From Klebsormidium nitens (Eukaryota; Plantae; Klebsormidiophyceae), in contig DF238762.1 of the NCBI GenBank assembly GCA_000708835.1, forward strand, positions 62,001-126,000: a DNA stretch of 64,000 nucleotides, given 5' to 3'. Both the position numbers and the translations under genes were made by a program. The notes beneath the pieces were generated by a model. It saw only the letters and a program-made list of their open reading frames with translations. It ran no database searches and was not told where the DNA came from. Shown one piece after another: positions 6,817-59,836 of the stretch (positions are counted from its first letter, which is position 1; each line of letters starts with the position of its first letter).

Positions 6817-7011
6817 CGTAGCCTCTTGCCATTAAAAAAAGATATTTTTGTAGCCCAATAACTATAACTTTGGGCTACAAAAATATCCAATGTTTATTTG
6901 TTTATTCTTTAAAAGCTTATTTTTTAAAGGTTCCCTGAAAGATTTCTAAATTTGTAAGTTCAATGTTAGGGCGCTCAATCGTGTAATTTTTTATTGATTG
7001 CATTCTACTTT

Positions 7012-7017
7012 ATGGGT
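7012..7017 (+). CDS. petB: Cytochrome b6, exon 1 (ATGGGT)
   Basis: 6-nt exon as in other streptophytes; joins to AAA GTC TAC at 8613 to give MGKVYDW, 215 aa. Confidence 0.8.
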
Positions 7018-7021
7018 GTGC

Positions 7022-7481
7022 TTGTGATTATCTATTACAATTTTTATACTATGACTCTTTAGAAGTTATACCGAGTGGTATGATTTGGCAGCTAATAGAG
7101 CGAATAAAATTAGACTTATGAGACAATTTAAATAAATAGGTAATTTAGGCAAAATGTTTTTAACGAAAATCTTCTTTACGCACATCGGAGAAGAATCAAT
7201 TCATTGGAACAAAAGTTTTACCAAGTCGCATGAGTCCGAGAATAATTGTGAGAAGATAATTCTTTCTCTAGAAACTTAATTGTAATGAATATTACAAACT
7301 TATATGATTCAATTTCATTTAAAAAACTAGAGATAGAAGGGAAAAATGAATAAAAAATTAAACTTTCGTCTCTTTATATTTTTAAATTCAGTAAAAAGAT
7401 TTAAAAAGAGACAGGGCCGTATGAGTTAAAAACTCGTGTCCGGCCCGATGAGAGGAAAACCAAAAGGTTTTCTATCCAGGC
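7022..7481 (+). other. Internal group II intron A nested in petB intron
   Basis: 5' TTGTG, domain V 7414-7446, bulged A 7474 at -8, EBS1 GCACAT (7180-7185) in hairpin loop pairs with preceding GTGTGC. Confidence 0.82.
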
Positions 7482-7753
7482 GACTCGCATCTCTCTTTGT
7501 AAATGATTAAAACAATAAAATCATTAGTCGACTCAGGCTTTGTCTTCGGTGACGGAGAAAAGTAATGCTTGAGTAGGATTGGAGTTTCAACAATCCTGTA
7601 CCGATTTTTTTAAAAATTAGGTTCGTTTAAACAAATGTGCAATTAAAAAACCTTAAAAGTTAGATAAAAAAAAAGCTGGAGTTTGATCAAATCCTTTGAA
7701 TAAACTTCTTTATACCAGTTCTATTTATATAAGGTATAGCATAGGCCTAACAC

Positions 7754-8365
7754 GTGTGAATTGAAGAAACCCATAGATAAAATATTATGACCTTTACTTC
7801 TTAATTCTATTTAAAAGATAAAAAAGTACTTAACTTTTTTGCTTAAAAGGTCTAATTCACTAAAGCGCTCTCTTTTGCCTCTTACAGAAAGGGTAAGAAG
7901 AAAATAACATAGGAGAAATATACAAAAAAGATAAGAAGATATTTTCAATTTTGTAAAAATGCATTTTAGCTTGTATTGACACTTGTATTGTTTTTTGAAT
8001 TGTAAGACAAGCTTATCGTGCTAGATAAAAAATGATTCTAAACATATTTTTTATGCTATCGAAGTACTGAGTGTTAGTATTTTGGATAAAACATTGAAGC
8101 ATAAAACACAATTTTGCAAAGTCTATTCTTATAAAAACAAAAAGTAGTGTCGAATATTTTGCTTTCAATCTAAGGAATAAACCAATAAATCTTAACAAAA
8201 TGAAAAAGAGCCAATAATAAAAGGTATGGCAAACTATATCTAACAAGATTGTTACTTTTTTACAAGTAAAACTTAATTGATATCAGTTTAGAGCCGTGTG
8301 CCTATAGTTTTGCATGCACGTCTCGAAGTGAATTAGTCAGGTAATCTATTAGCCTAACTCATTTT
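7754..8365 (+). other. Internal group II intron B nested in petB intron (3' end +/-1 nt)
   Basis: 5' GTGTG, domain V 8291-8324, EBS1 GTGTTA (8071-8076) in AAGTAC/GTATTT hairpin pairs with preceding TAACAC. Confidence 0.8.
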
Positions 8366-8597
8366 CTGTTCTACGAAATAAACAAAAGAGAAGACGAGAT
8401 AGTTTTTACTAGGCAGAAAAAATTTGAACTATCCTAGTACAAAAGATAAAATAATTTGTATCTTTCCGAAGATATGAATTGTGCCAACTAATAAATTAGA
8501 AAAACATAAATTATTTTTTATATTTTTTGTTATTAGTATGAGCCGGACGATGCACAAGCTTCATGTCCGATTCTAAAATGGAGGAAAGCTTTTATAG

Positions 8598-9254
<657 letters not shown>

Positions 9255-9319: not shown

Positions 9320-9811
<492 letters not shown>

Positions 9812-10066: not shown

Positions 10067-11123
<1,057 letters not shown>

Positions 11124-34094: not shown

Positions 34095-34575
34095 TTGCGA
34101 TCATGTAAATGATTTGAGGAAGATGGGGTTGTAAGCAAACCTTATGGGCATCTAGCAGATCGTTTGCTGAGAGGCAAGAGGTGACAGCTGCTAGTAAAGC
34201 TTTAATAAACCAAGAGGGTTTTCCTTCTAAGCTTCTATTTGCTTGTGCTTCAAGGCAATCCATGAAATAAGCGTAAGTTTTTTATTAAAAATGTAAATGT
34301 GTTTAGTCTTATTTCTCTCTTTGAAAGAAGACCATCTCGAGCAGCATTACGTGTAATGGGTTAGCTTGCTGAGCTTTTAACCTCTTTCAATCAAAAAAAC
34401 ATGTACCCAAGCCGAGAAGGCTTAGAGGAGGACAGGAACAGGTATGTTTTCTAGTTGGTCCATTCATGCAGATAAAGAAGATAGATCAGTGAATCTGTTG
34501 AAACGAGCCGGATGAAACGCAAAATTCATGTCCGGTTCTTCAAAAAGGAAAATCAAAAGGTTTTCCTATTCCTGC
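34095..34575 (+). other. Group IIB intron in the psbZ 5' UTR
   Basis: 5' TTGCG, domain V 34505-34538, bulged A 34568 at -8, EBS1 TTCCTT (34221-34226) pairs with preceding AAGGAG. Confidence 0.85.
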
Positions 34576-51099: not shown

Positions 51100-51620
51100 G
51101 CTTGGATAGGACATCTAAGGTTGTCCTTCTTTTTAGAACCGGACATGAGCTTTTTTCTGCTCATCCGGCTCTGGCCTACTTCTCTATTAATGGTTTTAAC
51201 AACCCTTGTTAAGAAAAGGCAGCAAACTTATGAACTTCTTATGAATTAAGTTTACTTCCTTTCATCCAAAAATTGGATGTTAATCAATTTGCCTGGGTCA
51301 GCAATTAGAGAATTTTGGAGCCTAGCTTGTACCGTTCCCTCTTTGTTCTTGTTAAATGCTAAACTAACATGCTCTGTGAATGCTAGTCTTTAGAGTGTTT
51401 AACAGGGAAAAGCATATATCTGTGCATGCAGTTATTTCGATACTTTGTTGCCAGTTAATGATTATCACTCCATTATTCTTTCAGATTTATGACTGGCTTT
51501 TAAGCCTCATTTTCTTCCTAGCTTTCACGAACTGCGTCTCCACAACTCGTCTAGGATAATCGTATCTTTTTAGCATCATTTAGCTTTCAAGATTTTCTCA
51601 CCCATGGTTATAGATCGCAA
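51100..51620 (-). other. Group IIB intron in rpl36 after nt 33
   Basis: TTGCG...CCTATCCAAGC, domain V plus 51136-51171, bulged A at -8, EBS1 ACAGAT (plus 51418-51423) pairs with ATCTGT. Confidence 0.92.
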
Positions 51621-55321: not shown

Positions 55322-57779
<2,458 letters not shown>

Positions 57780-59346: not shown

Positions 59347-59836
59347 GTGCGTCTTTTAACCTATTTGCAGCAAGCTTTCTTCGCTATAGTAAAACTAAAA
59401 AGGTCGCTGAGGAGCGGGCTATTACAGCTAGTGTTACTTTTTTTAATTCTTAAAAGGTAGTAAAAATGAATAAGCAATATGAATCACCTTGTAGATTAGA
59501 TCCCAAATGAAGTGGAAATTTTCAACGAAAGTGCTTGCTAATGCTCAATAGCGAGGTCTTGTGATTTTAGAGGGTGTACAAGCTTGACCTTAGTAAAGAT
59601 AATTGAAAGCTGCAAAATATAGAAAAGTCAATTTCCATAGACAATATTCTCTATGGAGATCAGGAAAAAAGATATAATAAGCAAAGTACTTTGTATTTTT
59701 TCTTATCTAGCATCAATAAGAAGATTTTTGATTAACAGATTATTTGAAATTGAATGCTAGTGAAAGAGCCGTATGAAACTTGTATTCGTTTCACGTCCGG
59801 TTCAAAAGGAGGGAGATAAAAAGATCCTATCTCACC
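59347..59836 (+). other. cemA group IIB intron 2
   Basis: GTGCG...CCTATCTCACC, domain V 59766-59803, bulged A 59829 at -8, EBS1 GCTCAA (59543-59548) pairs with TTGAGT. Confidence 0.9.

Follow-up and report, generated by a model that had tools for sequence, protein, structure and literature searches.

Does the 5' end of the petB intron exist in one piece in the plastid genome of Klebsormidium nitens, or is it assembled by the removal of another intron that has settled inside it? The question is raised by a stretch of 64,000 nucleotides (contig DF238762.1 of assembly GCA_000708835.1, positions 62,001 to 126,000 of the forward strand), here called the window, in whose numbering all positions are given. 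Its gene order (clpP, psbB, psbT, psbN, psbH, petB, petD, psbA, trnH, trnG, rbcL), its many tRNAs and its G+C content of 33-42% mark it as part of a green-lineage plastid genome. The two-codon petB exon ATGGGT is followed by GTGC (7018-7021), by a stretch reading TTGTG...CTATCCAGGC, and by GACTCG (7482-7487), the sequence from 7482 onward being GACTCGCATC. In the original prediction the middle stretch was an internal intron, here called A, that splits the first bases of a host group II intron. The reading favored here, at a probability of roughly 0.7, is that petB intron 1 is a functional twintron, a double one with a second internal intron (B), and that A is excised on its own, restoring GUGCG at the start of the host (Table 1).

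Table 1. Features of the petB locus and the putative paralogues of intron A, in window coordinates.
Feature	Position	Strand	Description or basis
petB 5' leader, conserved	6975-7011	+	adjoins exon 1 upstream; invariant runs 6975-7004 and 7006-7036 (nine variants)
petB exon 1, ATGGGT (Met-Gly)	7012-7017	+	RNA contig joint; same ATGGGT in orthologues
Host (outer) group II intron, first four bases GUGC	7018-7021	+	orthologues; RNA-skipped stretch begins at 7017/7018
Internal intron A (putative), 460 nt, no ORF, group II type	7022-7481	+	UUGUG...AGGC ends
A, predicted EBS1 hairpin	7170-7194	+	stem 7170-7177/7187-7194; loop 7178-7186
A, predicted domain V	7414-7446	+	33-nt hairpin GGGCCG...CGGCCC with 2-nt bulge; one variable column (loop base)
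A, predicted domain VI and 3' end	7452-7481	+	hairpin 7452-7476, bulged A 7474
Host intron, 5' part of domain I, from G5 (GACUCG...)	7482-7753	+	first 21 nt invariant
Internal intron B, 616 nt, GUGUG...CUGU	7754-8369	+	second nested group II intron, in host domain I; RNA joints
Host intron, 3' part	8370-8612	+	RF00029, conservation, consensus fold, end of RNA-skipped stretch
petB exon 2, to stop codon	8613-9254	+	ORF, translation, RNA joint
psbZ-leader intron (putative), UUGCG...CUGC	34095-34575		paralogue of A
rpl36 intron (putative), 521 nt, UUGCG...AAGC	51100-51620	-	L36 reading frame

That one intron lies inside another is demonstrated by comparison with other streptophyte algae, whose psbH-petB regions were retrieved via their psbH proteins. 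In Chara (L017/L018) and Chaetosphaeridium (L016) exon 1 runs straight into an unbroken intron start, ATGGGT|GTGTGACTTG, as it does in a third alga (L023), ATGGGT|GTGTGACCTG; the consensus form of this unbroken start is ATGGGT|GTGTGACYTG. Removal of A from the Klebsormidium sequence in silico gives ATGGGT|GTGCGACTCG, with ten bases that match the orthologues save for two pyrimidine transitions. A thus sits exactly between nucleotides 4 and 5 of the ancestral petB intron, where the original prediction had put it, with coordinates that were right to within a few bases. The related claim that excision of A restores a canonical 5' end stands as far as the restored sequence is concerned, which is that of the orthologues; that A is excised separately we infer from its conservation, its junction being absent from the RNA contigs. 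The stronger wording, that there is no host 5' splice site before A has been removed, goes too far: the bond 7017|7018 and host nucleotides 1-4 are present, and A merely separates these four bases from G5 and domain I.

The host intron is 519 nt long once A and B have been taken out in silico. In the consensus fold of eight variants treated in this way, the proposed pairing of host nucleotides 7-10 (CUCG) with CGAG at 8395-8398 is recovered within a longer closing stem (host nucleotides 7-23 with 8380-8398), which A does not touch and in which U8-A becomes U.G in two variants with the pairing kept. Besides this closing strand of domain I, the 3' part holds domain V (8540-8573), domain VI and the 3' end; the RF00029 match to host domains V and VI is weak (8538-8615, 29.2 bits). 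One candidate for the EBS1 of the host, ACCCAUAG (7769-7776, inside B), is complementary to UUAUGGGU of the leader and exon 1 at 8/8 positions, including a single G.U pair. Its sequence differs from strain to strain, however, whereas that of exon 1 is constant, so that the match is probably due to chance.

Several further observations concern the surroundings of exon 1 and the same site in other algae. The leader is constant in strains that differ by 20-25% over the remaining psbH-petB spacer, where 43% of columns are invariant (nine variants). It may contain an IBS2 for A and/or the host, a translation-start or ribosome-binding region, or a protein-binding site; no clear Shine-Dalgarno sequence is visible in it. 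Among the other loci, petB is uninterrupted in L013/L014 and L022. A JGI metagenome contig of streptophyte plastid type, rich in A+T (L015, 4407-5048), has a petB intron that apparently begins GGGUGG directly after ATGGGT, another non-canonical 5' end at the same ancient site. No "empty site" lacking A was found in more distant Klebsormidiophyceae, for which the contigs with a 92%-identical psbH stop just past that gene, and no Entransia contig was found in the sequence collections searched.

What does the RNA show? The data available are Logan contigs from four runs (X1, X2, X4 and X10), a form of assembly from which rare forms are lost. The mature junction is seen directly in one of the four: a 1252-nt contig from X10 joins 7016/7017 to 8612/8613, skipping 1595 nt (7018-8612) and bringing ATGGGT and AAAGTC together in frame. 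Exon 1 is therefore ATGGGT, the entire stretch 7018-8612 is missing from the mature RNA, and the outer intron is removed to give the correct mRNA; an alternative first exon, ATGTTA at 6963, which the original prediction had named as a condition under which it would fail, is refuted by the same joint.

Removal of B on its own is equally plain. Its joint, 7753 to 8370 with 616 nt skipped, occurs in three of the four runs (X1, X2 and X4), and an 845-nt contig from X2 lacks B yet retains the 3' part of A (7240-7481) and, beyond it, host intron sequence continuing into exon 2. Excision of B can thus precede that of A and that of the host intron, with the outer sequence retained. For A alone, the corresponding junction from 7021 to 7482 (GGGTGTGC|GACTCG, proposed in the original prediction as a check in the form ATGGGTGTGCGACTCGCATC) was found in none of the contigs of the four runs. 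A 1152-nt contig from X4 is unbroken across both borders of A, as is an X2 contig across the 3' border. The exact 20-mer of the A junction had a single match among JGI metagenome contigs, on a GC-rich bacterial contig and at about the frequency expected by chance, which is uninformative. Read depth in the metatranscriptome X1 follows sequence conservation along the locus, several strains being combined, and was set aside as evidence.

How far does A itself resemble a group II intron that could splice? Its predicted domain V is a hairpin of about the usual 34 nt with the 2-nt bulge, and in domain VI the bulged A 7474 lies 8 nt before the 3' border, within the 7-8 nt typical of group II introns. 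The loop of the EBS1 hairpin reads A-CGCACAU-C (CGCACAU at 7179-7185), and CGCACAUC, that is, EBS1 with the base adjacent to it, pairs at 8/8 positions with GGUGUGC|G, the end of exon 1 with host nucleotides 1-4 and the first base after A, a match equalled by 8 of 2000 shuffled introns. The claim that the IBS1 of A, GUGUGC, spans both the exon and the start of the host is borne out by this exact complementarity to the invariant loop bases GCACAU, by a C that would pair with the first base after A, an additional contact suggested by complementarity, and by covariation in the stem; the host bases GUGC thereby double as the 3' end of the IBS1. The putative fold of A has a z-score of -3.8.

Other features of A depart from the group II norm. 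Its first base is U instead of G and its last two are GC instead of AY, so that its ends do not follow the GUGYG/AY consensus. In domain V the triad is GGC where AGC is usual, the start is GGGCCG where GAGCCG is usual, and there is a G-C pair where most group II introns have G.U. RF00029 gave no match on A at E values up to 10, and the best Rfam plastid domain-V model matches weakly (17.5 bits, E 2.7). As Rfam also misses B, whose removal is proven by RNA, the Rfam test discriminates poorly in this genome. The rule of EBS1 plus adjacent base seen in A holds for B too, AGUGUUAG pairing at 8/8 positions with CUAACAC|U; two variants, L007 and L004, begin B with A instead of G (AUGUG and ACGUG). 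Taken as part of the twintron reading, A probably is a group II intron in working order, to judge from its sequence.

The deviant ends can be placed in context by candidate paralogues, found by scanning the window for domain-V-like hairpins. One splits the CxxC zinc motif of rpl36, and its joined exons encode a full-length L36 (Pfam PF00444, E 7.7e-20, residues 1-37 on profile positions 1-38), so that the borders of this intron are unable to slide. On this evidence an intron with UUGYG...GC ends can be spliced in this plastid. The other lies in the psbZ leader. All three introns start with UUGYGAU and end in GGAAAAYC...GGUUUUC(C)UAUYCNNGC, and they are 67-72% alike across domains V-VI; the psbZ intron has the same spacing of the bulged A as A, and the rpl36 intron the same terminal motif, CUAUCCNNGC. 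Since the 5' flank and A both finish in GC, borders placed 1-2 nt further left would in themselves give an identical product; with the rpl36 borders fixed and the ends shared, those of A are set at 7022 and 7481. The same ends in the rpl36 intron also argue that those of A are a trait of the family and not a sign of decay. A BLAST search of the window found no close paralogue of A, the best similarity being 72% and confined to domains V-VI. PMC4877394 nowhere uses the name "rpl36" in its text, and no column is given to this gene in the table of introns of PMC4007539.

Some other features of the window were noted in passing. The petD gene (9329-9811) is uninterrupted and has no intron. A strong match to the group II domain V/VI model RF00029 (10311-10401, 49 bits) stops some 30 bases upstream of the psbA reading frame, whose start is at 10374, in agreement with published work that places a group II intron in the psbA gene of Klebsormidium. 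On the plus strand a domain-V-like hairpin of 38 nt (59766-59803) is followed by a domain-VI-like stretch. Finally, the minus strand carries a full-length Rfam match to IsrR at 56808-56994 (173 bits). IsrR is a cyanobacterial antisense RNA to isiA, and the match is probably the antisense strand of the homologous psbC gene.

The evidence that bears most directly on the state of A comes from its relatives. An exact psbH protein match led to nine other Klebsormidium-type contigs and so, with the window, to ten loci, which represent nine distinct sequences in three clades. A is at the identical site in all ten, and the most distant variants differ from the window at about 25% of its positions. These differences are distributed very unevenly. 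In the presumed core, which comprises the initial 15 nt, the loop of EBS1, domain V and everything from the V/VI junction onward, 9 of 92 columns vary, against 161 of 382 in the rest of A (Fisher, 6e-10; nine variants), and five of the nine are loop bases, four in domain VI and one in domain V. The seven EBS1 loop bases are invariant, and domain V of A is better conserved than that of either the host or B. Each border of A lies within one of the two longest runs of invariant columns found between psbH and petB exon 2: the longest, 7466-7502, takes in the 3' strand of its domain VI, the 3' border and the first 21 nt of the host that follow it, and the other, 7006-7036, the end of the leader, exon 1, GTGC and the first 15 nt of A. 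The catalytic and exon-binding parts of A have thus been conserved selectively.

Individual helices also covary. The EBS1 stem has a double change from C-G to U-A as well as changes from U.G to U-A; the domain VI hairpin is retained although its loop changes between AAAA and UUCG and one G.U pair is replaced by A-U; and several stems of domain I show double changes. A consensus fold of A comprises 103 pairs, six of them compensatory, in a closed domain I (nucleotides 6-240), further stems, and domains V and VI. In it 98.8% of cells are paired, as compared to 41-48% with slid partners, a difference to be read with the fact that the fold derives from the same alignment and that the variants make up only three clades. 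With a fold predicted from the window alone, 53% of changed cells remain paired, a value within the 40-54% obtained with slid partners, so that this test does not separate the two; the same holds for B and for the spacer. The case therefore rests on selective conservation and the individual helices.

Several readings of these data have to be weighed. The main rival is that the petB intron is a "zombie" twintron, in which A is dead and the 1595 nt (979 after loss of B) leave in one step that uses the host 5' site, 7017|7018, together with host domains V and VI. There is precedent for it in plant mitochondria, where a host intron is spliced despite a dead insert in its domain I (sdh3i349g2-twin; PMC7049729), and it would account for an A-only junction that goes unseen while that of B is seen, for the X2 and X4 contigs that cross the 3' border of A, and for the non-canonical ends, unusual domain V and sub-threshold Rfam scores of A. 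The contig data are, however, too insensitive for the missing junction to count as absence: even the mature junction, which is necessarily present in any RNA library, was captured in one run of four, so that the failure to see A leave on its own is weak evidence. Nor does A look like a zombie. Such inner introns are described as decayed, with the bulged A lost and EBS-IBS pairing weakened (PMC7049729), whereas the domain V, bulged A, EBS1 loop and both ends of A are the most conserved parts of the locus, and its helices covary.

The position of the insert also speaks against removal in one step. In group II introns, nucleotides 3-4 (the epsilon-epsilon' interaction) and nucleotide 5 (lambda-lambda') make separate contacts with the core. 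An insert of 460 nt between nucleotides 4 and 5 would hold these contacts apart and should impair catalysis by the host. On balance we consider it unlikely that A is dead.

Another possibility is that A is excised but that host splicing is independent of this, A being removed in parallel or from the released host lariat, with its core kept intact by selfish mobilization in trans. The paralogues in rpl36 and the psbZ leader do point to past mobility, intragenomic proliferation of introns has been proposed for Klebsormidium (PMC4877394), and a reverse-transcriptase/maturase ORF has been reported in the psbA intron. Against this, no close copy of A is present in the window and its site is the same in 10/10 loci, which gives no sign of recent movement of a kind able to maintain the core in the absence of host-level selection, and we regard the idea as improbable. 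As to whether there is a nested intron at all, exon 1 might lie elsewhere, or the locus might hold one ordinary intron of 1.6 kb with domain-V-like hairpins that arose by chance. Nothing beyond the weak Rfam scores of A speaks for this, and it is already refuted by the RNA joints, which put exon 1 at ATGGGT and show B to be separately excised, and by the orthologues, whose unbroken ends define the insert to the base; chance hairpins would hardly be invariant across 25% divergence. Its remaining probability is negligible.

The strongest argument for a functional twintron is accordingly one of selection. At a fixed site, and lacking a reverse transcriptase of its own, A would be expected to keep an intact ribozyme core only through selection at the level of the host. 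With no ORF, a single fixed site and no recent copies, only the cost to the host of failed A splicing would explain a core that has come intact through 25% divergence. A would then have to be excised on its own, and necessarily before the host is spliced. Since A carries no maturase ORF, its splicing must rely on proteins supplied in trans.

A functional twintron could have arisen and could work as follows. An ORF-less A would have entered the petB intron of an ancestral streptophyte between nucleotides 4 and 5. In the precursor RNA, the loop CGCACAU of a hairpin in its domain I would bind GUGUGC, composed of the final two bases of exon 1 and host nucleotides 1-4, as well as the first G after A. 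Its domains V and VI, with A 7474 as the branch point, would then cut at 7021|7022 and 7481|7482. Ligation would rebuild the host's GUGCG beside the closing stem of domain I, and the host intron, 519 nt once B has gone, could then fold and splice ATGGGT to AAAGUC. A more elaborate version can be imagined, in which cytochrome b6 depends on three ordered group II splicings within one intron, A binds to the 6-nt exon 1 together with the first four host bases, A and the host compete for this short exon, the removal of A is a rate-limiting checkpoint, and the family of A, the rpl36 intron and the psbZ-leader intron spread by retromobility, invading the petB intron on the way; as a whole this version is doubtful.

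Why would a functional twintron here matter? The group II introns of plant-lineage chloroplasts are regarded as old, fixed and immobile, and a double twintron in a petB intron that land plants also possess would demonstrate group II mobility in an early streptophyte plastid. The nesting also corrects the intron count and annotation of Klebsormidium plastid genomes: two papers on these genomes, PMC4877394 being one of them, list a single petB intron and do not use the words "twintron" or "nested". If A is excised first, the locus is a natural case of a host 5' GUGYG assembled by prior splicing, and it could be of use in studying in what order introns are spliced, which nuclear factors assist degenerate introns, and what departures from the consensus (UUGYG...GC) group II ends tolerate.

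Group II twintrons were described in the chloroplast of Euglena, beginning with that of psbF (Copertino and Hallick, 1991, as cited in PMC8393795 and PMC7049729) and followed by complex ones excised as several introns (Drager and Hallick, 1993, as cited in the same two sources); according to what these and other sources say of them, twintrons have since 1991 also been described in cryptophyte and red-algal plastids, cyanobacteria, fungi and plant mitochondria. The petB locus shares with the Euglena cases a group II intron within an important part of another, in a plastid photosynthesis gene, as well as an inner intron that is small and ORF-less and the presence of more than one inner intron per host (here A and B). 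In Euglena stepwise excision restores the outer intron; for A such excision is what its conservation suggests. The setting is also different: a streptophyte primary plastid and not the secondary plastid of a euglenid, with an ancient petB intron shared with land plants as the host. The insertion lies inside GUGYG after nucleotide 4, whereas that of Euglena psbF is in domain V, and the UUGUG...GC ends of A differ from those of the Euglena case.

Plant mitochondria offer a second comparison, with one functional twintron (atp9i87g2-twin) and two zombies (cox1i1149g2-twin and sdh3i349g2-twin) described by Zumkeller, Gerke and Knoop (2020; PMC7049729), who call twintrons "a novelty for plant organelles." These too belong to a streptophyte organelle, their inner introns are paralogous to others of the same genome, and for them as for A it has to be asked whether the inner intron is spliced or carried along, one zombie lying in domain I of its host. 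They occur in lycophytes and hornworts, and their zombies have a decayed domain VI and weak EBS-IBS pairing, in contrast to the intact and invariant counterparts in A.

Within its own genome, A resembles the rpl36 and psbZ-leader introns in its UUGYGAU start, in domain VI and the 3' end, in size (460-521 nt), in the lack of an ORF, and in the base beside EBS1 that would pair with the first base downstream. It differs in interrupting another intron, where they interrupt coding sequence or leader, in a domain I too diverged to align with theirs, and in a GGC triad in domain V where they have AGC. Lineage-specific group II introns have been reported from the Klebsormidium chloroplast (Lemieux, Otis and Turmel, 2016; PMC4877394), and no twintron from a streptophyte plastid came up in our literature search. 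The petB nesting is another case of a known class, the twintrons, and as far as we found it is new for a streptophyte plastid; its points of interest beside the known cases are the lineage, the ancient host of land-plant type, the two inner introns, the insertion within GUGYG, and the non-canonical ends.
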